From Klebsormidium nitens (taxonomy: Eukaryota; Plantae; Klebsormidiophyceae): a DNA stretch of 52,022 nucleotides. The notes beneath the pieces are model-generated. The model was not told the DNA's origin and did no database searches. It saw only the letters and a list, made by a program, of their open reading frames with translations. The stretch is taken from positions 1 to 52,022 of the forward strand of contig DF237556.1 of NCBI GenBank assembly GCA_000708835.1. The letters run 5' to 3'. This document shows, one piece after another, positions 3,960-50,744 of this stretch. Within the stretch, counting starts at the first letter, position 1, and every line of letters begins with the position of its first letter. A program made the translations under genes and the position numbers.

Positions 3960-4563
3960 GCAAGTAGGATACTGGCAACGCTCGCTTGCACTAAAAGCCG
4001 CTTGCACTAAGATACACAACTCCCGGGCACCCAAGCTAAAAACCCGAACCAAACAAATCACGCGCTCCGCACCCGCACCCACCCTAACCACCAAGCTAAC
4101 CCTACCCGTTCCCCGGGTGCTTATCTTAGTGCAAGCTAGCGTTGCCGCGCCGGAATGCAAGTAGGACAAAGTACACTATTATATTAGTGTCTCCGGAATT
4201 TCTTCAGTGTTAGCACCCTCCCGTGCCGCGACCATAAAATTGATAAATGAACAGGTCGTTGAAGCTGGCCGGTAGGTACCACACCTGCACAGCGGTCATC
4301 CGGGCACTTGTTATCGCCCGGCCGGGTAGCTGGACGACGGGCAAACCTTCCCGGCAGTGTCACCGGGAAAATTGAGGGGTCTCCGGGATGTACTCGGTAC
4401 CATGCCGGTGCCCGGTCGAGGAGGACCGGAGTCCTGCATCCAAGCAAACAGATCATTCTGACACATGTCAACAGTCAGACCATCAATTGACGCCCTGTGA
4501 AAGTATTTACTCTGACAGATCGACCGGAGACACTAATATAATTGTGTAGATTGTCCCTTTTGC
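3960..4563. mobile_element. Non-autonomous Mutator-like MITE (element D), interrupted by element A
   Basis: About 40-bp imperfect TIRs: GCAAGTAGGACAAAGTACACTATTATATTAGTGTCTCCGG versus the reverse complement of the right end GCAAAAGGGACAATCTACACAATTATATTAGTGTCTCCGG. 9-bp flanking repeat GCCAGCGTC (3951-3959) / GCCAGTGTC (4564-4572). Confidence 0.75.
3969..4156 (-). mobile_element. G-rich-core MITE, copy A
   Basis: Inverted arms GCTTGCACTAAGATA / TATCTTAGTGCAAGC; direct repeat GCAAGTAGG(A) at 3960-3969 and 4157-4166; core homologous to 29201-29388 and 42833-43031. Confidence 0.8.
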
Positions 4564-13723: not shown

Positions 13724-16700
13724 ATGGCGCACCTCGCGGGTCCCGGCATTCGCATTCTCGCCATTGCGCTGCTGACGGTGTTGTGCGCGTCCAATGCTGC
13801 TGCCCAGGGCATTCTTGCCCCCTGCAACCTCACGACGGTGAACTACTCAGCATACACCCCGTAAGTTTTCTTCATCATGTTTCCCCTTCTGTCATGTGGC
13901 GCCATCTTGTGGGGCTCAAGAACATCTTTACAAGAGTTTAGAGTCCCCTTTTCTTGGTGGGAGTCACCTGGTTTTCAATGCGCCAGCGCCAAAAATAAAC
14001 ATCAGCGATTTCTTTAGAGCTAAGTTTGGCGGAAGCGCGTGTGCCGCATTGTTGCGGTCAAATATTGGCATAAAGGTTTGGAAATGCTGACCCTAAGTCT
14101 TGAGTCTCCTAAGCATCTGTATTGGAAGGGCAGAATTCATGTGGGGTCAGCCACGCAACTGATCCAAAAGGGAATGCATTGCACAGGTCACATTGAAATT
14201 CCAGGCAACTGCAAAGGTTGCAGTAAGGAGAAGCTGTCTCCTCTACTGTGGTACATTATGGCTCAAGTTGAAGGCTTTCTTTGGGCCTAGATTTTCTTGC
14301 CATTAAAGATTCGATATCTTGAGCTAAACCAGGGAGTGTGAGAATAGACGTTATCAACTTGAGCTTGTCGGATGCGCATGGCAACCATGCCGCAACGCTG
14401 GCGAAAGTTCCCATTGACCCATAGTATGTGTTTGGAAATGATAAAGCTACAAGTGACACTTCTGAATATGTGTAGTGTAGTGTCATGGCCAGCTGGCAAG
14501 TGAGGTCAGCCACTCCTTTGACTTAGAAAGGCATTGCATTGCACTGGTCAAACTTGAATGTGACCAGTGCAACCTTTGCAGTTGCCTTCAATCTCAAGGC
14601 AACTGCAAAGGTTTACATAGGAAAAGGTGTCTCCTTTGATCCTTTTCTGTGTTGCATTTTGCTCCGAGTTGTCTTTCTTTCATTCCTAGGTCACGGTTGG
14701 CCATTATCAAGCTAACCCAGAGATAACCATAATTGACATGAGCTTGCCCTGAGGAATTTGTTGACTGCATATGCTGCGATTCTTTCCTGTTTTAGTTTCA
14801 TCTGAGAGCTTCTTCCGTGGGCGCTGTAACACAAACAGAACTGAGCTCCTTACAGAATATGGTTCTGTGACCACTTGAAGGAATACAGGTGTACTGCTTC
14901 ACATCCAAGCCTCTGTCTTGAAAGCCTTGTTCTGGCCAAGAAGTGACTATAGCAGCTCTCAAAGTTGTCACTTTTCTCAGATCTGCAGATCTAGCTTCCA
15001 AGGCCCAAGCGCATTGCATGCACAGCTGATGTCAAGATTGTATGGTTTGGTTGCCCTTCTGCTCTTCTTGACGGGTGTGTTTGAGAAGGCAATGCCACTT
15101 CAAACTGCATCATCCAAAGCCCCAAGTTTTCCGTTCTGAAGACCTTCTACTTGTTTGCTGAGGTGGGTTCTCAGAAAGGCTTTCAAGGAGGGCCACAGAC
15201 TCCCGGAAGTCAGTCATCAAGGGGACGCTACCTATAGCGTCTAGATAAGATCAAATTCTGTGACGAGCGGCGCAAAATAAGTTTGACTTTCCAATCCCCT
15301 CAGTTATCTTCCAACGTCTTTGAGTGGGACCTAAACCAGAGACCTTTCCAAGACCCATACCTAAGATGGTTGACAGTCGATGTGGTGGACTTTCTGCCAA
15401 GCTGGTAATCATAGTCAAGGAAGATAATGAGAAGCAGATTCGAAGTCAAGGGAAGCGGGACTGGGACAGGTAGAGTTGCTTTGGGGGTTAAGGATGGGAA
15501 GGGGTATAGAGCACGGGTTGCATTGTTTGTGTCAGTCGACACTAACCATCATCTTGGCTTATATCATTACGTTAATAAAGCTGGCGACCCTTACAATGGT
15601 CAAGTTGATTGCAAGAGGAAGGGGAGGCATCACCCTCTCAAATCTGCAGGAATCAGCAGGAAGACTATCCCATTGTGTTCTAAAGTGGCAGCTCATGTGC
15701 CTCCGCGAATTACTGAGTCATGCTTCGTCAAAGCCCGTCAACTGCAGCAATCTCAGTCCACTCACACAAGCTCAACATGCACATGGGCTCTATTCGAGCT
15801 CAACCAGTGAACCACTTTCCGGCGGTCAAAATTTGTTGTGGGTGGCTGGTTCTGAAATCCAAGCTGTTCTTTCAGGTGCTACACCTTCAACAGTTCAACG
15901 CCCTTCTGCTGCCCCACCCCAAGCACCAGTTGCTGCGGTTTCGCCGTCATGCAGCCCACCTGTTGCTCGACCACAAACGGGTCGGTTGTCTTCACCCAAA
16001 CCCCTTCCCCGACCACGGCTGCCCCGACCACCCCCGCCCCGACCACACGCCGGCCACCGGTTACGCCCGCCTCCGACCACACGCACGCCACCAGTTACCG
16101 CCCGCTCCGACCACACGCCGGCACCGGTACGCCCGCNNNNNNNNNNNNNNNNNNNNCCCGGTCACCCCGCCCGACCACGCGGCACCGGTCACGCCCGCAC
16201 CGACCACGGCGGCACCGGTTACGCCCGCGCCGACTACCCCTGCCCCGACCACCCCCGCCCCGACCGTGCCCGCCGGCCCGCTTCTCTCCCCCTGCAACCT
16301 GAGCACCGTAGACTATGCAGTGTATACTCCGTAAGTGCTCTGCAGTCATTCTGGCCTCGTTGTGGTTTGAGAAGGCTTTTCTGCGCCAGTCAAAGATCGA
16401 GGCCATTCTCTGGCAGGAACTTACTTACGGTGAGGGTGAGACGGTGCACGTTTTACTTTGGGAACTATCTGCAGAAGTCGAGTTGCTTCGAGAGAGAGTG
16501 GGAGGCGTCATCAGCGACTGGTTTTCAAGTTCCTTCCCTCATTCGCAAGTAGCAACCATGAATCCCGCCGTTAAGTTCTACGCCAGCTTAACCTTAACTT
16601 GGTTGGACGGCCATCAAGCTTCAATTCTCTTCTCCACAAAACCCAGCCGAAGGCTGATTCCACCCTCATCAAGCAACCCCTCACGTCAAGAGGCATCGTG

Positions 16701-18573
16701 CATAGCTGGCGATATGTCAACAAACGCTGACATTCCGGCATTCTCCCAGGTGCTACACTAACAGCGGACCAACCCCCTTCTGCTGCCCCACCCCGAGCAC
16801 CGGTTGCTGCAGCACCCCCGTCGGGCAGCCCACCTGTTGCTCGACCACAAACGGGTCGGTCGTCCTGACCCAAACCCCTTCCCCGACCACGGCTGCACCG
16901 GCCACACCTGCCCCGACCACGGCTGCCCCGGTTACGCCCGCGCCGACCACGGCGGCACCGGTCACGCCCTCTCCGACTACGGCTGCACCAGTCACCCCTG
17001 CCCCGACCACGGCTGCCCCGACCACTCCCGTGCCGACTACCCCTGCCCCGACCATGCCCGCCATGATTCTCTCCCCCTGCAACTTGAGCACCGTAAATTA
17101 TGCAGCATATACTCCGTGAGTGCTCCTCCAGGCATTCTGGCTGTACTTGAAGTGTCATCGTGGGTTGAAAACTTCCTTCTCTGCATCGGTCCAAGCTTGA
17201 GGCAACTTTCATGGCAGGAACTTGCTTACGGCTGGTTCGAGATGGTGCACGCTCCGCTAAGAAAAGCTTTTGTTGAAGTCGAGATGCCATCAAAGAGTGG
17301 AAAGCTTCATCAGCGGCTGTTTTCAACGTTGACTAAGCTTCATGCACGCAAAGCACCAATCCCGAACCCCTCAATTAGGTTCTTTGGCAGCTTAACCTTG
17401 CATTGGGCCATGCTTGATCAGACCGCCATCAAGAGCGTAAAACGATCCTAGACACGTGAAAAAAACGTAAGAACTTTGGTCATAGCGCTGCCGTTGATCA
17501 ATGGACTGGGGGCATTCTAACAAAATGGAAACAAATTAAAGAACAGTTTTTCTCCTCCTACAACAGGGGATCACCCTTCTTCGCAAGTCCGAGCCAAAGC
17601 CTCACCACGCCCTGATCGAGCAACGTCTCACGTCGTAGAGATCATGGATGCCCGGCGATATGTCAACAAAAGTTGAAATTCCGGTGTTATTCCAGGTGCT
17701 ACACGACAAGCGGACCCACCCCCTTCTGCTGCCCCACCCCGAGCACCGGCTGCTGCAGCACCCCCGTCGGGGAGCCCACGTGCTGCTCGACCACAAACGG
17801 ATCGGTCGTCCTGACGTCCCAAACCCCCGCCCCGACCACTTTGGCCCCGGTCACCCCCGCCCCGACCACGGCTGCCCCGGTTACGCCCGCCCCGACTACT
17901 CTCGCCCCGACCACCGCCGCCCCGGGACCAGCACCGCAAGCGTGCGACCCGGCTTCGTCCTTGCCCAACCAGGTGAGCAGCTCGTAAAAGCACTCGTGAC
18001 GGTTGGGCCTCGCCAATGATGCACTGAGCGGCGGCGTTCATCTGTCTAGGTACATAAGGTCGCGTTGTGTTTCGAGAACGGCCGATTCGTTCACACTGAC
18101 TCTATTCATGGAAGCCTTTCGGTTCTGTGAGAGCCGAGTTCAGGGGTGCCAGAAGGGAGAAAGTAAAGGTGCCGAATCCAGTCGACTTGAACGCTGCAAG
18201 TACGAAAATGGAGTGTCACCTTCTGTACTCGCGTGTATCGAGTCGCACTCGACTGCTCTTGGCGGCAGTCGGTTACTCCTTAGATGGGCAGGATCCCTGC
18301 TCTTCTCATCTTCGCCTCTGCCCAACCAATCTGAGAACTGTCATACATTACTCTTGTACGCTGAGGCCTTTGATGGTTGACCAATATTCTCTTTACAAAA
18401 GCTCAATGGTGGGCATTCAAGCCCTAACTTCTTCTGGCCGCAATCTGAGCAATGAATCGAGCGATATAAACGCCTTTGCCCGCCGTGCGCAGTGCTTCAA
18501 CGCCGCCGGGAACGCCTTCATTTGCTGCGCCGGCAGCTGCCCTTCGCAGCCTGGAACGGCGCCCGCCTGTTAG
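13724..18573 (+). CDS. Secreted chimeric Cys-rich / arabinogalactan- or mucin-like (PAPTT repeat) protein
   Basis: Exons 13724-13860 (signal peptide MAHLAGPGIRILAIALLTVLCASNAAAQG), 15876-16330 (contains the N gap and local indels), 16750-17115, 17696-17972 and 18493-18573 (TAG). All GT-AG with consistent phases. Three C-x12-C-x9-CC-x6-CC-x8-CC modules are each followed by (T)TAAPVTPAP repeats; a six-Cys module ends the protein. Confidence 0.85.
14539..14613. repeat. Two abutting hairpins in intron 1
   Basis: TTGCACTGGTCA...TGACCAGTGCAA followed by AACCTTTGCAGTTGCCT-9 nt-AGGCAACTGCAAAGGTT. Confidence 0.7.
15340..17972 (+). repeat. Tandem exon+intron units of about 0.9 kb (3 copies)
   Basis: The exons and intron 3' ends are homologous (e.g. 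GGCGATATGTCAACAAA...CCAG|GTGCTACAC before 16750 and before 17696). Confidence 0.8.
16137..16156. other. Assembly gap (20 N) inside the PAPTT repeat exon
   Basis: Run of N; the repeat units just before it are garbled, as expected for low-quality sequence. Confidence 0.95.
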
Positions 18574-23900: not shown

Positions 23901-26900
23901 CGGAGACTGACCGTGTATGAAGCACTGCGCAACCAAGGAGCTCCGGTTGTAGACGTTTTCGATCTTCTCCGGGGCGATGTACTCGCCTTGCGCCAGCTTG
24001 AAGATGTTCTTCTTCCTGCGCGGAGCGGGTTTTGGGGCGTCAAGACACCTGTCCTCCGAGCATAAAGTGCGCTTTGTGGCAAGAGTCGGCGCTCATTGCT
24101 ATCACAAAGAAACGAGCTGTGCAAGCAAGGGAGAAAGAGGAATTGGCGACGACAATAAGGAATGACTCGACCTCTGCAAATCAGGCTGATTGAAGAACAC
24201 GTCAGGGCAAAGAGACACAGCTACATGCAGGCTAATTTCCCCCTTGACTCCCCTTCCTCTCGGATCCTGAGGCTCGCAAAAGGTTGCTTCTTGTCTTGGC
24301 ATACAAGGGTTATGCCGGCCGCCTATTTGGCCGGCAGACGCTCTCCGTTATCGTAAGTGTAAAACACGAGTTGGAAGGTCCGATACTCGAGCTCGCGACT
24401 TTGTGAAGTTCAAGCTCTTTAAGCGGAATGCACCAGTCTGAAGCCAGTCAAGACATGCTGATTCAAAACCAAATCATTGAGTTTCCAAGGCAACACGAGC
24501 TTGCCTGTCAATGATCTTGAGCCGCCCCTTGTCGACCCACATGCCAATATCCCCGGTGTGCAACCAGCCGTCGTCGTCTACCGCGTCTCGTCTGCAGCCC
24601 ATGAATGAAAACGTATCACAGTTTGAAGTCTTTCTAGTTGGCTAGGAAGCGTCATGAAATCATCACAAGCCGCTTCGAGTGCCACTGTACCATCAGACTC
24701 CGAGACGACAGAAAAAAGCTTTCAGGGTTCGTCGAATGTAAATGACAAGCAAGAAGCGTTCAAGAAACGCGAAAGCAGGTGCGAGTACCCTCTTTACGAT
24801 GCGGGACAGCCTACAGCGGAGGCCTGAAGTCATTCGCACAAGCTTCAAAGGTTCTAGATATCCTTGCCCTCTTCCCAGACTGTTTTTTCAAGTCGCTAGA
24901 TTGCAGAACCCAAAAGTTGCTCGAGCGCGTCACCTGTTGCGAGAGCTAAGGCAGATCTTTTCGCTCATTGATGCAAATGCCTAACTGTATAAGAGCTGGC
25001 GGTATTTTCCTTATTACTTTCGAAAACCGGTCGGACAATTGAAGTGCACATGTCGGTGACGGAACCAATCACCACGTAGAGCAGCAAGTCGGGAACGAAC
25101 AAGGAAACGTTTCGGCCTTTTCTTCGTATAACCCTTGATTGAAAGGTTCCTGTTGTTTGCGCTTCTCGTAACTTACGTCTGTTCCACGTCCTTGTAGTAG
25201 CCCTTGAAGACGATCGGCCCCCGTACGCAGACCTCTCCCCGGGGGTTGGGCTTGTCATTGTTAGTGTAGTTCATCTCCGGAACGTCAACCAGCTTGACCT
25301 CTGTGGATAAGAAGGTAACGGGTTGTTTCGCGGTTCTTATGTTTTGGGTATCAGGGTTTTAGGTGCGTTCACAGCCCAAGGCATCGCGCTTGTCGTCGTT
25401 GGTGTGATTCATCTCAAAAATCCCCCCCAGCTTATTCTCTGTATAAACCTCTGTAAAGCAAGAAAATGTTATGTCCAAACCCTTTTGGTCAAATCAGCCG
25501 GCTTGACAAAACCACCGGTATAAATCTATGCAGAGCAAGAAAGGTTATGCCCAAACCCTTTGGTCAAATCAGCCGGCTTGACACACGCACCGGACTACGC
25601 TTCCCAACTCAGGGAGTGGTACTTTTAATCTTCGGTGTCTTCCATTTGAGAAACGTCGAGCAGCTTGATCTTTGTGAGTGGAAAACGACAAACCGGGTCA
25701 AACCAGTCGGTCCAAAGTCGCCCAGCTTGAGAGATATGCATCCTGGGGGTTTTCCGAGCGGAGTTTGTCCAAGAATCCAGATCTGCAGTCTACGAAATTA
25801 GGAAAATCGCCTGATTCTTCACGTGCGCGGGCAGACACAATCTTCACGAATTTTGGCTCACTCGTAATCCTCAGCAAAAGGGCAGAAGCCTCTGCAACTC
25901 GTCTCGACAAGAAACTTCAAAGGATTCTTCGTCTTTCTATTCATTGACGAGGGTGCATCGCTGGGTGCTCGAAAGAAAAGCGAAGCCACAGACCAACACC
26001 TAAACCCCATTGAACTGCAGGTCTTCAAGCCGCGTCCGGTTTCAAAGAACGATCTTCATGCCTTCTGCGGAGAGGCGCTAAGCAACTCGGTTGAGGGGAT
26101 CCGTGTGTATTCTTTCGCCAAATGCTCGGTGCCTTAAACTGCCCTTCAAGTGCCAACCGTGAATGGAAAGTTCCCACTCTTTACTCTTCCAGCCAATATC
26201 CGGAATTTGAAGGAGCTTACAAAACCGGAGAGCTCACCGCAGGCAGGGTTGGGAGCGCCCACAGAGCCCGGCTCGTTATCGCCCTCTTCTTGAGTGGAGA
26301 TGACGCAAGTGGTCTCCGTCATACCGTAGCCCTCCACCACACGTGCAACAAAGCATCTGTGAATGTCCACAAATCTGAAGTAAGTATACGCAGAAGCTAT
26401 ATCTAAATGCCTCTGGGAACATAACCGGACGGTACTTCTTGCAATTGGGACAAGACGCCTCAACGAACGAGAGTGCAGACCGCATAGACCAGCCTGCAAT
26501 TGAGTGTAGCACTTCGGGCACCGACACTGGTAGATAAAGCAAATCAAATATACGAGGATGCAGAGAGGGCTGAGGGTAAATCTTTGCGACCGTCAAACTT
26601 TGCACAGAAATGACACCACTCACGGCCACCTTGTACACTGCAATCATCATTGCTCTCTTGGGCTTAGCACGCAGAGGCCCCTAGCTTTAGAGCTGCCAAA
26701 GAGCGGACGCCTACAGCTCTTGAGAGCACGCAAAGAATCCAAGTAAGAAATCTAAAAACATTCCGGAATCCTCACATCTGCAGGAACTCGGAGACTTCGG
26801 GCGAAATGGGCGACGCCCCGGTGGCGAGGATGCGCACGCGGCCGCCTAACCGCTCCTTGATTTTGTTGAAGACGAGCCGGTCCCAGACGGGCGAGACACG

Positions 26901-29900
26901 AGTACCTGAAGGGGGAGTTTGAAGGCTTTGAGTTACAACTGCGGCCATAGGGTGGTTACTGCACCGGGCCCCTTGAACGACGTGAAAGAGAGAGGACTGT
27001 ACCACAAATGATCTCGAAAGCGAAGAGTCGACTGAACGAATCGGCCATATCACTAGAGAACAGCAACCATTAATACGCAATATTCAACGCCCGGAAGCGG
27101 ATTGGAGTTGCGCCAAACAGATTTCTGCGGCAGATCCTCGGCTGCCAGCCGGCGCATCTTAGACGAGCGGCAGCCCCTCTTAAGCCAGCTACCTTTGTCC
27201 ATCAATGAGTCGTACTTGGCAAGGTAAAATATGGAGGCCTCCAAACCGCTCGTTATCTGAACACCAACGCTGATGTGCCAAGTATGTTTGTTGCGAACAC
27301 GTCTGCCTAAAAGTAAAGCCGGGAAACGCGCACCTTTTCGTAGGCCAGCCTTCTTCGAACTGTAGGCCACGTCGAAGAGGCGCTGCTTCAGCCCGCCAGC
27401 ACTCCGTACGGTTGCGTTTATTCTGCATCAAGAAAAGCCCGGATGCCGTCAGGACGATGCAATTGCGAACAACGACGCACGAACAACATTGAAACAGACC
27501 GGGCTTCACTACACAAGTGCAAGAACGTCTCGAAACTGAGAGCCAGTGAACATCCTAATTGCTCAGCTGATCTTAAGTCGGAAATTTTGGGTTCGTCTTC
27601 GATCGACCAATCGACATTCCCGACCTGGTTAAAGACAATCTGGATTTAAACCAGGATGGGAGATGTAAATCATCGCGCAAATGACAGCCGGAGCTCGAGA
27701 TGCGCAGAGAACGACCACGAAGTCAAGCTCTGACTTCAGACCTGTCGTAGATGCGGTTGTACAGGCGGGGCACACTGGCGAAGAGCGTGGGCTTCAGCTC
27801 CTGCATGTCGTCCATCAGCTTCAGGATGTCCTGCGTGGGTGACGAAGATGCTGACGTCAGCACTCAGCGTGCACTCTGACACGCGAGAGAAGTCCAGCAA
27901 GCATCAACATGGCTCAAGATGTTGACGTTGTAAACTCGGGAACGGCTAGGAACGGCTGATAAGTACCGGGCCAGCTGCTGAACGGGGCGGATGCAAGCAT
28001 AATCTCAGAGGGAGATAGCAGAGTCGATCCCCAAATTCTGTCACTTTCGGGTCAAAGTCTTCACCTTTGGTCAGATTCTCTGCCTTCCTTTACGTATCTT
28101 CCAAACCCACTTCCCCTCCCTTCTGGTTGAACTGATTGCAGCAGAGTCGGAACAAATCGTCAATCGACGGGCAGAATGGAGAATCTCTCGGACCAACTCA
28201 CCCCTTGGTAGAAGCCGATGGCGACTCCGTTGTGGATGGCCATCTGAACATTGAGCCGTTCGTAGATGTGCGCGAGCGGGAGATAAGAGATGTGCCTGCA
28301 GACAAAAGGTCGGGCTATTGGCTTAGTACCAAGCTAAGGGGAGGTCATATCTAACCTATGAAGGTTCTGAAAAGTAGACAAAAGGTGTGACAACCCAGAG
28401 AAAAGGTCGAGATCGTTAACCAGGTAGGACCTCCACGTTGCAAAAAAAGCGTGCAACTTGAAAATCGACCATAGAGAGTGGTTTCAGATTCAAAAAGAAC
28501 ACAAACGAAAAATGTTTACGAGAATTTCCAATAGTGTAGATACACAAAACAAGCTACCAGGCAGCCAGGAACAGACGCTGCTGACTCACACATCGCCAGG
28601 AAATGTCTCATTCATCATCGCCATGCCGGCCGTGCTGGCAACGAAGTTTGAGTGCGTGATCATTGCCCCCTGCAAGAAACGCCATGCAAACAAAATAAGG
28701 GCGTGAGTCACGGCAGGAATACGTCACTAACACAAAATCGAGCACATGCGGTGTTCGAATTGGCCTAATATGGGCTTGTTGGTCCCCGCACGTGAGGATG
28801 ATAGAAGCACATAACAATTCTCCGATGTGTGGCAAACAGTGTATGCTATCCCACGACGCAGAGCTCTAGGTAGCTCTAGTTCAAGTGACTGCGACCATAA
28901 TCAACGAGAATAAGAACGCGACTTTTGACGACCAGTGGAGCGAGCAAACGCTCTGCAGCCTTTCAGTGCCGTATATACAGGCAAGTCGCACAGGATTGTG
29001 GCGCAAAAGAAGCAAAGTCCTCAGACACTCCGAAATGTACACAGCTTCCAAGTCGACTACTGGACGAAGAGTAAGCATCTTGGTGAGGGCGTACCTTGGG
29101 CGTTCCGGTGGTTCCGCTGGTGTAGCAGATGGTGGCCAAGTCTTGACATTGCGGGGGGGTGAAAGGGAGCGGGTTCACTCGCCCCTGAAACGGAAAGCAA
29201 ATCTCGAAACACTTCAGGAATAGTAGGCTTCAGGAATAGTAAGATTACCAGCCTGGGACGGGTAGGGTTAGTTTGGGGGTGTAGGGTGGGTTCGGGTGCG
29301 GAGCAGTTGATTCTAATAGGTTAGGTTTTTAGTTTTTGGTTTGAGCTTACTATTCCTTGAGCTTACTATTCCTGAAGTGTCGCGACATGGAAAGCAACCG
29401 GCTGTTCAGCCCGGCTCGTTTTGAAAGCAGAATCTGACCAGTGGCTGTTTTGAAGATTTAGGCGAAGGACTCCAACAAGGCGGCGGCGAACAAGCAACCC
29501 GTGTCTGGCTCTTTGGAGAAAGGTAGCTTGTAAGCTTGGCGACTCGAAGGGCCTTGTCTGCAATGGCTGAAGGATAAATCTTTGCAGAGCATTGCTGTGC
29601 AGGCTGCCCAGCACGCCCAGCGAAAGAACCAACGGCAAGCCAGAGAGAGTAAAGAAGGGCAGGGCTGGGCAAATAATTGAAGATTCTCCTTTTTCGGACC
29701 CTTTGAACAGACTTAATCCCTGACAACCACGAAGACCTTCTGGAAATTGGTTTTGAAAAGACTCCGCACCTGCGCTTCCAACCTCGAGTAGGGCATGATC
29801 ACAACGTCCCGCTTCGGGGGGGGGAGCGGCAAGGTCTGTTCGGTGCCCCCCACAACGACGATGACTCGGATGGAAGGGCACTCGTGAAGGATGTCCATCA

Positions 29901-40700: not shown

Positions 40701-43700
40701 GTTCCTGACCACGTACGAGCCGGTCCAAGTGACGCTCCAAACGGACGAGGTGACCAACATCCCGTGCGGCACGAAAGGCGGGGTCATGATCTACTTCGAG
40801 AAAGTGGAGGTACGGGCATCTTGCTACGCAGTACATAATCCGGGTTTGTTACAAATTCACTGCGCGTGTACTGATTCTTAACGACTTTGACGGCGCTCCA
40901 TAAGGTCGAAGGTGACTTTTAACAATTCAGCTTGTCCGGTCCCGGGCCATATGCTCGTTGCTGAGGAAAGCCTGCCGGCTCCGGATTTTCGTGTACATCT
41001 CCTGTCGACGTGAGTCCTTACGTCGGACGGACACTTTAAAGGATTTTTGATCGGTGATTTTCCTTCTCATGCGACATAGCGCATAAACCTAGAGATTGAT
41101 TTTAACAGGAGGACTTAGATCCATGTGGAGACCGTCAGTACAGAGCCAGGTATCGTTATCGGCGAACTGATCTTGTTCTCTTTGGTGTAAACCACCGTCT
41201 GGCTCAAATGCCGATCGCCGGTTCTCCGTTGCAGGGTAATGATGCAGTTACATAAGGCGCACGTGCTCAACACACACCGGCAAACAGCATCTAGTCCAAC
41301 AAGAAGTGGGCTGACAAGGATCTCCGCCGTTTTAACCTTGCCGGACGATGAAGCTTTTATTCGGACGATTCGTTCTGATAAGTCGCGTACAAGCTAAGTA
41401 AGGCACACGTGCACGAAATTACCAAGGAGTAACGCCAAAACATGGATCCCCATGGATCACTTTCGACACAGATTGTTCTGTTCCGAAGACAGGTTCCCTG
41501 ATCTGGACGCTTCTTTTCCGGGTGTGGTGAGCAAGCTGCACAAGGAGCACGTCCCGAGACCAGTCAAGGGAACGGCATTCTCAACAACTCAACAAACTAC
41601 ATCAAGACTTGGATCAACAGCGATTTCCCCACTTCCGTCGGACGCTAGAACTCTTGACCGGGACGCAGAAATTTTCGATTCGGACGTTTCTTTTCTTAGG
41701 TGGTGAGCAAGCTGAACAAGGCACACATGCACGAGACGATTAAGGAGTCCGGCATCCAGTACCACGAGATCCGGACTGACGTCCGCATTTATCACTCTTA
41801 AAGTCAATCAAACGCATACATTCGGACGCAGACTTTTTGATTTGGACGCTTCTAGTCTGCAGGTGGTGAACAAGCTGAACAAGGCACGAGCTGCGTGCAC
41901 GAGATTATCAGGGAGTACGGCATCACAGTATGACAGTATTTGAATCTACGACAGTATTCCTCACACCAAATTGTTGGGCTCAGAATCTTGATCCGGAGGC
42001 AAAGTACCTGCTTCGGACGCTTCTTTTCTGCAGGTGCTGAACGTGGCGGCCGTTGCACGAGGCGATGTAAAAGAAGACGGCTTTTAGTCCGGCAAGACGG
42101 GGATGATCACCCAAACTTTCACTTGACGCGTTTGCTTCTCTCTTTCAGACGCGTAAGAATACTTTCCTGCAGGTGGTGAACAAGCTGAACAAGGCGTTCG
42201 TGCACGCGACGATCAAGGAATACGGCATTCAGTACGACAAGACGTGGATCTACGACAAGATCCACCACGAGATCAACCAGTTCTGCAGCGCGCACTCGCT
42301 GCAAGAGGTGTACATCGACCTCTTTGACCAGATTGACGAGATCCTCAAGGAGCTTATACAGGTAGGGTGATTGGTCTTTCTTAACGTTGATAGAGCTTCT
42401 CCTTAAGTTGGAAGCGTAGGCGCGGCGATGCCGAGTTGTGCAGCTTCTTGGCGAGGTTGTTTTGAAAACAACAATAGAGACCGTGGCAGGCGTATTTTGA
42501 CTGCCAGCGCTTGAAAGCTTATTCAGGATCAAGCGATTGGGGTTACTGGAGCTAGGTTCGTCTCCCTTGTGGCTAATCTCGCAGTCAGGAGCTTGGTTTC
42601 AAGTTAACTACACATTGTTTACAACCGGGACAAGTCAAGCTTCAGAATTGGGATGCAAAAGCCTTGGAGAAGGCAAAGTACCGACTGCTCCTTTGACGTG
42701 GGGTGCTGCCACTGTAATTGAGTGCTTCAGCTCGGTTTTCATTTCGGCGAGGTACACGTTGCATCCCTCCTGCTACATTCTGAACAGTTCCAACGCTCGT
42801 CCCTTACTTCCAGCAAGGCACTTGATGATTCCAGTAGTCTCGATTTTATGTTGGAGTTACGGCTATGTTGAGTTAGGTCATGCCCGGGGGACGGGTGGGG
42901 TTGGTTTGGGGGTTTAGAGTGGGTACGGGTGCGGAGCATGTTAATTTTGGGTTTAGGGTGTTAGTTTGTTGGAGCCCGGGGACTTTATCTAACTCAACAT
43001 ACACCTAAGTCAACATAAAATCGAGACTTATGATGATTCCCCTGAAGAGGTTGACTGCATTTCGGTACACCGCTCATGGCATGCACTTGTGTTATGGTGA
43101 TTGCGTTCAGGAGCTTAAGAAAAATCTGCTGTTTGATTCTTACGAAATGACGTCGCAATGCGCCAGGTAGCAGAATATTTGGCAACGTCGCGCCGTGTCC
43201 GAGCTTTTTGTCGTTGATTGCACGTGCTTGCGAGGCAAAAAAATTATTGTCATCATGCAGAGAGATTGCACGCGCTACGTGCCCGGGTTGGAGATCATCG
43301 GCACCCGCGTGACGAAGCCCAGCATTCCGACGTCCATCGTGCAGAGTTGCGGAATGGCCTGCTTCATTTCTCTACCGGAATGTCAGTAAAGTCGTATCAT
43401 CCCTGCAGAGAGACTGCACGCGCTACGTGCCCGGGCTGGAGATCATTGGCATCCGCGTGACGAAGCCTAGCATTCCGACGTCCATTGCGCGCAACTACGA
43501 GGCGATGGAGGAGCAGCGGACGCAGGCGCTCATCGCGGCGGAGCGGCAGAAGGTGGTCGAACGAGAAGCGGAGACGGACCGTCGTAAAGCGGTGAGTAAC
43601 TTGAGCTGGCTTTGAGCTCGTGACACCTGGCTCTCAATCTCGTTTGTTGGATGATGTGGGGAGGGCTACGTCTGCAGGATCCACGTTAGAGTGCTTGGGC

Positions 43701-46373: not shown

Positions 46374-49300
46374 TCATCTGGATATACGCACCGTCCAAGT
46401 GCTCTGAGTCCGCGCATTGAGGTCCGCCAAAGCTGTTTCGAGATCGCCCCCCGGAATGTCCGCAAACATTTCGCTCTTCTGAGCTTTCCCCAAAGCTTTC
46501 CGCTGTTCCGGCCGGCTGCCCTTGGACTCAATTCCGGCTTCTGTCTTCTTGGCTTCCGGAATCACAGCCATTTCGGGCGCAGAGCCCTTGGGCCCGGCAC
46601 CCTCATCAAGCTTCTTACCCGTTTCGACTTTCTTTCGCCTGGGACCCGCCTCGTCGAGTCCCTTCTTTCCGCCGGAAACCTTGGTTTCCGGTTCCGTCTT
46701 TTTCCGTTCCGCTCCCCCAGAGGTTTCGCCGGGGACTTAGACGGAGTCCTCGGGCTCTTCAGTTGGGCCTCTTCTAAGGTAGCGGATCCCGGGGGAGACG
46801 TTTTCAACCCCAACCGTCCCCGTTCCGCTTCTGGATCCGACTTCCTCAGCTTTCCCTTTTTCGTTCCGGTCCCCTTGGGTTCCGGTTCCGGCTTTTTCCT
46901 CCCCTCCTTTGGAATATCCGCTCCGGCGGTCACAACCGTGGCTGTAACCTTTTCGCGAACACTTCCCTTCTGCTCGTAGTCTTCACCCGCAAACCTGCGA
47001 GTTTCCCCAATGAGTTGGATTTCCTCCTCGGAGGAGATCCCGGCCAGATCTTTTTTCTTTTTCTCTTTTTCTTGTTGCTTCCGACTCTGCCGCTTATCCG
47101 ACTCCCCTAAAGCGGCCAAGAGTCGTTGAGCAGCCCTGTCGTTATCCTTCCGGTCTCCTTCCGAAAGATTTGACCACGCCGGAACCCCCCACTCTTCATT
47201 CGTGAGCAAATCACGAACGCGATCCTTCGTCCACCGCGGCTCCTTTCTGCGATCAAAAACGATCTGCTCGATGACCGCCGCGGGAATCGTAAGATCGACC
47301 TCCTTGAAGGCAGAATCGAGGTCCTCGTCGCGGGAGCTGCACTGGAAGGCTGACAGCGGCACAGTCCGTGGACCGTAAAGCTGCTGGGGATCGTTCAACA
47401 TTCCCCACTGGAACAGAACCCCCCGATTAGCGCTCCTTTCCCACTCCTGAAGCGACGCGTCCAGAGCTAACTGTTCCAACTCCACAAGACCCAGATCCGA
47501 CACCGTGGTGCCGTCCACGTACTGCAAAAAGAACTCGTCCGGCATGAAAAGTGCAAACCGTTCGCCTACCGGTTCCCCCCACAGAATGTTCCGTAAAAAT
47601 CCGTGGACTTTCAACTGCAGCTGGGGAAACTCGATTCCGGCGGACTCCCACTTCCCTTCCGTGCCCTCGAGAAGTTGGATCTTGCACCAGACGCCGTCCT
47701 TCCGCATCTCTTCTACAAACTTTCCGCCCCGGTCGCTCCTAGACCCAAAACGCTTGACCTTGTCCGCGCGCGCGCGGCGAAGCCACTCGTCTTCCGCCGA
47801 AGTTTTTGCCACTTCCCATGCACGCAGCATGTTGCTTTCATTTTCTTCTGCCGGCTCCTCGGTCGTGACCGTAGCAGTCGGCCCCTGCCCCGCTCCTTCC
47901 ATCTCTTCGCCGGGCTCCTCCCGCGACTTTTCCCCTCGGCTTTGACGACGTCGCGCGCGCGCGCTCTCCGCCTCACCGCCTTGGGCGCCCGCGGTGACTC
48001 CGGTCTTCTGCTTCTTCGGCGTCGGCGCGCGCGCACCACCACCGCGGCCGCCGCCGCTCGACTCGCGCCGCCGTACCACATCCACGAACGACGGCGCCTG
48101 CGAGTCGGTTCTGCCCGCCGACTGGGCACCTTCTACAGTCTGCTCACCCTCGCTCTTGAGTCCTTTCCGTGGAAAAGGACACGCAGCGCTCGCCAACTCC
48201 CGATCCGCCAACACCAAAACCGACTCCCAAGTCTTATGGGCCTTGGCGAGGACTTGTATCTCCCGGGCTTTAACGTTTCGCAGTTCGCTCCGCAGGAACG
48301 GGGGAAAGGTTAAGGGTTTTTCCAACCACAGCGCAGTATCGCGTGCGATAGCTGCCAGTTCCTGTTCCACTCTTCCCCCGGTAAGAACTGCCGAAACTCC
48401 GTACTGCCATTGTCCAAAGGACTGCGCCAGCCTTGGCCGTTTAGCAATCTTGCTGGACCATTGCCCCACGAAAAAGTCAATGTCCTTCCCCGCGGGGTCG
48501 GACCGCTCGTGCCGGGCCCACTCCGCTATCCCCATCAAATACGCTTTCTCCTCGACCGCATGGGGTCCGCTAAGGAGGTTGAACGCCTCACTCAGGACAA
48601 TCCGCCGGAGAATCCCGATGAGGAACTGGATCAGCGGCTGGCCACGCAAGTAACACTTAACCCGGACGTGCTTCAAACAGTGACCGATGACGAAAATCCA
48701 GTTGGCCAACAACTGGGTACAGACCTTCCCCGCAATCGCGTTGTGGCTTGCCACTAACGCTTGGGCCCCATCGATCTCCGTCAACTGTTTGGGCTCCGTT
48801 CGCGGGTTCGCCGAGATGACTTCGAGAAGAGGCGCTTGCAATTCCTCAAAACGAAGATCCGGTTGATGCGGGGCGTGCAAGACGTCCAGGGGCCGGTGTA
48901 AATCGGCCTCGTCCAGCTTCCCCATGGCCGCGTCCTGCTCTTCAGCCGTGGCTTCAGAGCGCTCTTTCCGCAACGATTTTGGCCGAACTAAAGGGATCTC
49001 TTCGGATTCCGTGGATTCCGAAGTTTCAGGAGGTCCCCGCTTCCGATGGGACCGCTCCTCCGCTCGCTGCTGCCGCTTCTTCCTCTCCAGCCCTTCCTCG
49101 CTCATACCCCGCCGGTATGGACGTTTCGAACCTGCGAAGTTGAGGGCAGGACTCATTGAGTTGAACTGCGGCGGAAAGGGACGAAACCATGGAGCTTGCG
49201 GACCTTCGTAATAGCCTGCTCCAAACGGAGGCTGGCAAAAGGGGGGGCCACGAAATTCCTCTCGAGGAAACGGGCAATAAGGAGGTTGGGCATAGGGCGG

Positions 49301-49477
49301 ACGCCATCCACGGCGCGGACCTCCTCCAGGTACTCGCGGACGAACTGGATACGGGGAAAATACCGGCAAAGCTCGTGAGCGTTGCGGAACCATTTTTGCC
49401 CGAGATGGTCTTGCAAAACCGCCTTCTTGTTTTTGAGACCGGGGAGCCACCCAAGGAACGCGTAAGGGCCTTCGCAT
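46374..49477 (-). CDS. Large unrecognised ORF of the integrase element (971-aa frame plus a frameshifted C-terminal extension to 46374)
   Basis: 971-codon open frame 49477-46562 with a Pro-rich N-terminus, basic NLS-like tracts and two ordered regions. From about 46850 a different frame reads more naturally (ERKKTEPETKVSGGKKG, echoing RKKPEPEPKGTGTKKG) and ends at 46374 with one internal TAA, indicating decay. Confidence 0.6.
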
Positions 49478-50744
49478 CGGAGTCGATGACCCCTAATCGT
49501 CCCGGGCCGCTTCATTAACACCCAATCCCCTTTTTTCAAAAGCGCGACCTTGTTTTTCGCCGTGGCGTTCCATCGGGCGAAGTTCTTTCTCTGCACAATA
49601 GACGCGCCCAAAATCATTGCCTTGGCCGATGATTGAGCTTGGTGAATGTTACTAATCCTCTGCTGGCGCTCCGCTTCGGTCTCTGGGCGATTGAGGTTCG
49701 GCCGCACCAACCCGTGGCGAGTAGGAAGACTGTTGATTTCGATCGGTAAAAGGGGGGAACGACCGTAAAGGCATTGAAAAGGAGACATTTGAATAGTGTC
49801 CTGAAAGGTGGTCCTAATATCGAACGCGACTCCGGAGAGATGCTGGTGCCAGCTGTCAGGGTGCTCGTGAGCACACTTCCGCAGACAAGCTTTGATCACC
49901 TGCATGTAACGTTCAACCTGACCATTAGCCTGCGGACTGTTAGCCGCGATCGGGACATGATTCAGATGCCACTCCTTCAACTTCTGTTGAAAAACGGTCG
50001 AAAACTCCCCACCGTTATCCGTTACCACTTCAAAGACTCCGGCGTGCCGGTGGAGAACTTCTCGTAAGAAATTCCGAGTCATTTCAGGGGCCTGGTCAGT
50101 CTTCAAAGGCCACATCTCAATCCACTTAGTTACCGAATCAATAGCAACTCCGACGTATCGGTATTGCTCCGACCCAGACGGCTGAAAGCGCCCAGCAGTA
50201 TCTACATGAACTCGATAAAAAGGAGCAGTCGGAGGGGTTGGATGGATCTCCCGGTCGCTCCGCGGAGCTTTCCTAGCCTTCTCAAACTGGCACAAGTGGC
50301 AGCGTTTAACCATCTCAGAGACAAAAACAGTCATCTGCGGAAACCAATAACGCTTTGCACTTTAACCCGCGTCTTCTCACACGAGCCCGGATAATGCCCC
50401 TCGCCCTTGTGGATATCTTCCACGGCCTGAAACCTTTCTTCTGCCCACAAAACTCGCCGGAAGTCCGGCTGTTTAACCAGAACTTCGGCTCCCCCATCAA
50501 TCACCACTTCAAGCTTATTCACTTTAACCCTAGAACGAAATTTTGCATTCGCCCTAGCTTTTGCTCGCCCCACTTTCGAGTTGGGTGGCAAGGTCCCGTC
50601 CCGCAAAAACAAAAATGCGTCCCGCAGGAATACTTCTTTCTTTTGCAGAAACGAAAAAGCCAACGGATCCTGAGCGTGCCCAGGATGTGCCGATAAATTA
50701 GCCACAAGCACTTCTGTGCCAGTCAACCGCGTTTGCGGTTCCAT
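49153..50744 (-). mobile_element. Ty3/gypsy-type (rve) integrase, frameshifted at about 50353
   Basis: FLRDGTLP, then HKGEGH...KT (50744-50331 frame); one base short, then RYWFPQM...CHLC (HHCC); HVDTAG, VTDNGGEF, QANGQVER (D,D-34-E); GDWVLMK...EGPY (GPY/F module). Confidence 0.9.

Follow-up and report, generated by a model that had tools for sequence, protein, structure and literature searches.

Composite inverted repeats assembled from short tandem units have been described for Tm1 of root-knot nematodes, in which the units measure ~14 bp, the target-site duplications are of 9 bp (8-10 bp) and MITE-like members exist together with a Phantom/Mutator transposase (PMC3169594). Tm1, a Mutator/Foldback family (cf. 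Drosophila Foldback), is the closest described family that we found to three elements, here designated A, B and C, which lie in a 52,022-nt stretch of Klebsormidium nitens DNA (the whole of the stretch that was analysed, referred to below as the window). The likeness extends to the short tandem arm units (16 bp in our elements as against ~14 bp), to the predominance of 9-bp duplications within a range of 8-10 bp, to the existence of non-coding MITE-like members, and to arms that match each other imperfectly within a given element. However, the arm motifs of Tm1 are common to all members while the middles differ, which is the reverse of the situation described here; in addition, the arms of our elements have just two units each, and the window yielded no transposase.

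A second relevant system is VANDAL/VANC of Arabidopsis, where family-specific short DNA motifs co-evolve with Mutator-encoded binding proteins (PMC5735166). As in the present case, closely related elements each carry a multi-copy short motif of their own, and in VANDAL/VANC this motif changes together with the sequence-specific protein that the element encodes. VANC motifs, in contrast to the boxes described below, are found within large autonomous elements, in their internal non-coding parts, and have an anti-silencing role, whereas the boxes form the arms of non-coding elements of ~190 bp and their protein partner is only putative. Stowaway, Tourist and MULE-derived MITEs are similarly small and non-coding, possess inverted ends and target-site duplications, and are often found within introns or near genes; but ordinary MITE families are defined by conserved ends, and in A, B and C conservation is lowest at the ends. 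A conserved central domain that is common to families with different ends, as here, is a property of the CORE-SINE, V-SINE and Deu-SINE superfamilies; these, however, are retroposons whose heads derive from tRNAs and whose tails derive from LINEs, whereas A, B and C are DNA elements with inverted repeats and duplications of fixed length. Within the literature on Klebsormidium MITEs or introners, we found nothing relevant.

The three elements are 187-198 bp long and each lies between perfect target-site duplications of 9-10 bp (Table 1), at the sites given in the first-pass annotation, whose edges had to be shifted by one base only. When the whole window was scanned for direct repeats of 9 bp that flank inverted ends, only B and C were returned, without any false positive, and such structures are therefore not chance products in this window; A was missing from the output of the scan because of an indel in one of its arms. 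The inverted arms comprise 21-43 nt that are 73-100% complementary, so that terminal inverted repeats are present, and the terminal nucleotides differ among A, B and C. The near-equal length of A and B (187 and 188 bp), considered as a sign of a fixed scaffold, was dropped as a coincidence because the left part of A is 10 nt shorter, and its right part 10 nt longer, than the counterpart in B. None of the three elements has coding capacity, with only short open stretches running through them. Rfam at the gathering threshold gave no match to a known RNA family across the whole window and, in E-value mode on B, returned only noise (E above 6), while ARAGORN gave no tRNA that would point to a tRNA origin.

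Table 1. Elements A, B and C, their parts, a degraded core and the host intron of B (positions within the window)
Feature	Position	Strand	Remarks
Element A	3970-4156	-	187 bp; G-rich on the minus strand
Target-site duplication of A, GCAAGTAGGA	left 3960-3969; right 4157-4166		10 bp, perfect
Arm boxes of A, CGCTTGCACTAA twice	3983-4014	+	16-bp period; inverted copy at 4126-4136
Core of A	4022-4117	-	CCCGGG at both boundaries
Degraded fourth core	15452-15513	+	BLASTN E about 1e-5; several G-runs broken
Host intron of B	29185-29769	-	585 nt, phase 0; inferred from sequence
Element B	29201-29388	+	188 bp; copy on which the first-pass annotation centred
Target-site duplication of B, GGAAAGCAA	left 29192-29200; right 29389-29397		9 bp, perfect
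Left-arm boxes of B	29212-29243	+	two 16-bp units
Core of B	29252-29340	+	left boundary CCTGGG; right CCCGGG missing
Right-arm boxes of B	29341-29372		two perfect 16-mers
Element C	42833-43030	+	198 bp
Target-site duplication of C, TGATGATTCC	left 42823-42832; right 43031-43040		10 bp, perfect
Left-arm boxes of C, TATGTTGAGTTAG type	42846-42879	+	right-arm boxes at 42989-43020
Core of C	42883-42981	+	CCCGGG at both boundaries

When the elements are compared with one another by BLASTN, 87-99 nt of the middle align at 78-82% identity (E 1e-14 to 1e-17), and the three cores are about equidistant from one another. The core of ~100 bp that had been proposed is therefore real, but it consists of two parts that differ in conservation in the three-way alignment: a block of 55 columns, made up of CCCGGG and the G-rich core, at 85-87% identity, and behind it a T/G-rich tail at 51-62%. 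An invariant 19-mer, GTGGGTNCGGGTGCGGAGC, occurs three times in the window as against 0.04 expected. The arms, on the other hand, share 28-38% identity between elements in the same alignment, which is about the level of chance, and a gapless comparison anchored at either end likewise gave chance values (24-35%). With core and arms so far apart in identity, drift at an equal rate from a single TIR consensus is ruled out. Accordingly, two propositions of the first-pass annotation hold, namely that a positionally conserved core is common to three elements, each with its duplication, and that the middle is kept while the arms vary, the reverse of the norm for MITEs.

The window contains a fourth, degraded core (Table 1), for which no recognizable arms and no duplication were found; an inverted repeat around it (73% over 15 nt, in the wrong register) was taken as chance, and the sequence is probably an old relic. 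Elsewhere in the window, a GC-rich and strongly skewed stretch (16024-17924) carries C-rich tandem repeats of 15, 30 and 34 bp and long ORFs on both strands without Pfam match, and is interrupted by an assembly gap of 20 N (16137-16156); a further tandem repeat, a 75-bp unit present 1.9 times at 88% identity, is found at 25441-25583.

Despite their different motifs, the arms of A, B and C have a similar scaffold, as had been noted from the sequence before: the terminal 11-14 nt are followed by two boxes, a TAAGAT-like junction and then CCCGGG. The box is specific to the element, measures 11-13 nt and is present twice per arm with a start-to-start period of 16 bp (one arm of C has 17 bp), which gives up to four boxes in an element. 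The count of three to four motif copies per element, tandem as well as inverted, was borne out (three in A, four each in B and C), and the deficit in A, with two boxes on one arm and one on the other, corresponds to a missing 16-bp unit. Boxes are nearly identical within one element, and no motif of the A, B or C type was found elsewhere in the window. Between elements, the 5' seven nucleotides of the box are wholly different (CGCTTGC, CAGGAAT and TATGTTG), and the 3' ASTWA(G) end of the box together with the inner junction are, by our own reading, the only parts in common.

Taken as a class, A, B and C are foldback/Mutator-like MITEs in variant form and not a new kind of system. They have the inverted ends, which fold into long stems in all three, the fixed-length duplications, the small size and the absence of a transposase gene that are expected of MITEs, and depart from the definition only in that the terminal repeats are not common to the members. 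Duplications of 8-11 bp, mostly 9 bp, are the mark of Mutator/Foldback (Phantom) elements, and those found here measure 9-10 bp; composite arms built from tandem sub-repeats are also present, in a minimal form with two units per arm. Insertion involved staggered cuts of 9-10 bp made by a trans-acting enzyme, and from two features only, duplication length and composite arms, we infer that this enzyme is a DDE transposase of the Mutator/Phantom type. Merlin and Chapaev-type elements likewise make duplications of 8-10 bp, which counts against the assignment to a superfamily, and neither a MULE-type DDE transposase gene nor an autonomous partner was found within the window. Another integrase-bearing locus does occur in it: at 46565-50334 on the minus strand, an ORF of 393 amino acids with an integrase core domain (rve, E 7e-10) adjoins an ORF of 971 amino acids without Pfam match, and the two are probably part of a retroelement or of another mobile element that bears an integrase. 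Overall, the reading that we prefer, with a probability of roughly 0.6, is that A, B and C are non-autonomous, hairpin-forming cut-and-paste DNA transposons of the foldback type belonging to three sub-families, a comparison of arm types that is drawn from three full copies. Points that speak against it include the differing terminal nucleotides and the state of A, where the duplication is perfect although a box has been lost and one end is irregular.

Considering how three sub-families of such transposons may have come to possess different arms, we suggest that the four phased boxes, two per end, may well serve as docking sites for a sequence-specific protein, and that the sub-families may derive from one ancestor in which the boxes were re-specified as a set. 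Co-divergence of the boxes with different trans-acting proteins would be the likely driver. The four copies of a box could be kept alike by conversion or duplication acting through the hairpin and the tandem repeats, while the core and the scaffold (the ASTWA(G) end of the box, the TAAGAT junction and CCCGGG) would be retained as cis requirements. A joint change of four boxes would presumably need one of three things: a changed binding protein that selects for it, fast homogenization (the tandem units slipping against each other, or mismatches being corrected between the arms within the hairpin), or arms built anew from a single unit. Put more generally, and as a tentative proposal, the elements could represent a natural specificity-switching system, with four-box arm sets matched to different transposases or VANC-like factors, or else it could be the core that spreads, as a module, from one arm set to another.

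A copying mechanism behind the arms had also been put forward, and it found no support in the three copies, since templating from the target site and templating from the element's own core were both at the level of chance. For the target site, comparison with random 9-10-mers of the window gave p = 0.09, 0.21 and 0.69; non-cognate pairs of duplication and arm box score like cognate ones, the resemblance of the cognate pairs having been first noticed by eye. For the core, each arm box had looked as if repeated where the core of its own element ends, with a 7-mer common to arm and core in A and an 8-mer in C; shuffled cores equalled the observed match (p = 0.37 for A, 0.14 for C and 0.99 for B), and non-cognate pairs also give 7-mers. 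Both forms of templating were rejected.

Among the alternatives to re-specification in place, the one that survives best, albeit as a rather unlikely explanation, is that a core bounded by CCCGGG has moved between unrelated foldback MITE families, the arms having been replaced and not evolved in place; such a move would have gone by way of template switching or gap repair, with the CCCGGG palindromes as its sites. In agreement with such an exchange, identity jumps from ~35% to ~85% exactly at the left CCCGGG, and identity in the arms is at chance. Relatives of the core from public data also bear on the matter. A scan with the invariant 19-mer gave 76 metagenome, 2 viral and 88 prokaryote genome loci, all of which are, according to BLAST, seed-only chance matches in GC-rich DNA except for one (L073), a metagenome contig of 1.8 kb and 51% G+C in which 39 nt are 85-87% identical to all three cores. 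Word searches with the translated core yielded six short ORFs in ENA/Logan contigs (P0001-P0006). These matches, together with L073, place the core family outside the window as well, and two of the six (P0001 and P0002, in ENA contigs of 637 and 899 bp) contain two tandem cores each, 38 residues (114 nt) apart, which suggests that the core is a repeatable unit. Against exchange between unrelated families, one design underlies all three arm sets and points to a common descent of the arms; moreover, the right edge of conservation is gradual and not sharp, and the window holds no element in which these boxes are combined with another loop.

Less probable still, and in our view doubtful, is recognition by structure only, whereby the enzyme would read the shape of the hairpin together with its loop, as integron integrases do with attC sites, and the sequence of the stem would be free to change so long as the arms remained complementary, the box repeats merely reflecting a recent duplication within each arm set. 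The single strands of A, B and C each fold into a stem of ~45 bp with an unpaired loop of ~95 nt that holds the core (DNA fold z-scores of -7.4, -3.6 and -7.3 for the three elements), and it is consistent with structural recognition that the stems are retained in all three while their sequences differ, that the conserved part is the loop and that the termini lack conservation. Free drift, however, would not hold near-identical tandem boxes at a fixed period of 16 bp in three sub-families, the stems contain 5-27% mismatches, and duplications of 9-10 bp point to staggered double-strand cuts and not to single-strand hairpin recombination. Re-specification of the boxes as a set, within a common scaffold, continues to be the account that we favour.

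The core itself had been described as telomere-like and prone to form G-quadruplexes (G4). The telomere unit of Klebsormidium species, including K. nitens, is TTTTAGGG (PMC3622300), and this unit is absent from A, B and C, as is a double telomere unit of any type from the window. TTAGGG occurs once in A and TTTAGGG once in C, at a non-homologous position, and neither is found in B; the description as telomere-like thus has to be abandoned, and a reading of the core as an interstitial telomere repeat was rejected, there being no tandem units of the host type. The G4 claim fares better, though only in part. Canonical motifs (four runs of three or more G, with loops of 1-7 nt) are present in B (two) and in C (one), which between them hold two of the four canonical clusters of the window, but A has none, since one loop would need 15 nt. 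Quadruplex-aware folding predicts that every loop contains a G4 of three layers, formed from different, non-homologous G-runs in each element, with energy gains of 3.8, 12.5 and 9.5 kcal/mol, values that may be based on RNA-derived energy terms. The core has seven G3 runs, five of them invariant, and variable columns fall on 2 of ~21 G-run positions as against 5 of ~26 others, a difference that is not significant (hand count in the three-way alignment). From these predictions, G4 potential of the cores appears plausible but not uniform.

As to the genomic setting, B lies in a predicted intron of a gene for an AMP-binding, long-chain acyl-CoA synthetase-like protein, the downstream exon of which matches PF00501 with E 5.5e-9, and the joined exons around the intron read ...SRLEAQ/GRVNPLPF... 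(the slash marks the junction). The element ends 16 nt before the predicted 3' splice site, with its duplication within the polypyrimidine tract, and the original branch region is consequently now ~200 nt distant. Within 29185-29260 (minus strand), the CCTGGG of B provides CTAAC, a pyrimidine run and CAG/G on the transcribed strand, so that a cryptic 3' splice site inside B is possible as judged from these motifs. C lies in an intron of a plus-strand gene for an SPFH/Band 7 (erlin-like) protein, whose flanking exons match profile positions 23-63 and 133-171. Just downstream of C, an SPFH/Band 7 exon-like segment of 87 nt is tandemly duplicated (43256-43342 and 43404-43490, 92% identical and 148 nt apart), which could represent two alternative exons or a pseudo-exon. 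No gene was recognized near A, the ten neighbouring ORFs giving no Pfam match. An origin as introner-like elements was rejected for B and C, both of which sit inside longer introns of conserved genes, and also for A, where by our own reading the use of splice-like sites within the duplication would leave the original sequence unrestored. In B, the transcribed strand of the core, as read from the sequence, is the C-rich one, whereas in C the G-rich strand is transcribed; this opposite orientation relative to the host genes disfavours a strand-specific role in RNA.

That the core is under selection for a function at the level of the host, as a G-quadruplex, as a site for a telomere-repeat protein or another factor, or as an intron signal, with the arms as mere vehicles, is very improbable, for although the seven G3 runs with five invariant, the share of B and C in the canonical clusters, the G4 predicted in every loop, the loss of several G-runs in the arm-less relic and the intronic position of two of the three copies agree with it, A lacks a canonical motif, the predicted quadruplexes draw on non-homologous runs, G-runs show no clear depletion of variable columns, the telomere unit of the host (PMC3622300) is absent and B and C are oppositely oriented with respect to their host genes.

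Finally, transposon families are defined and mobilized through their ends, and a middle that is kept while the ends change raises two questions, the first concerning the role of the middle in cis and the second how four binding boxes can change jointly without loss of mobility. What the present analysis contributes is the 16-bp phasing of the boxes, the 3' half that they have in common, the negative outcome of both templating tests, the opposite orientation of B and C in their introns and the relatives with double cores. In practical terms the effect is an ordinary one, with elements inserted into introns and in one case 16 nt away from a splice site. Should the arm types prove to match different transposase lineages, the elements would constitute a compact natural series for the switching of protein-DNA specificity; should they not, hairpin-based or modular routes to new MITE families would be indicated. 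If specificity switching or spread of the core is true, the co-evolution of transposases with the specificity of the ends would become directly testable on a small and abundant element in a streptophyte alga.
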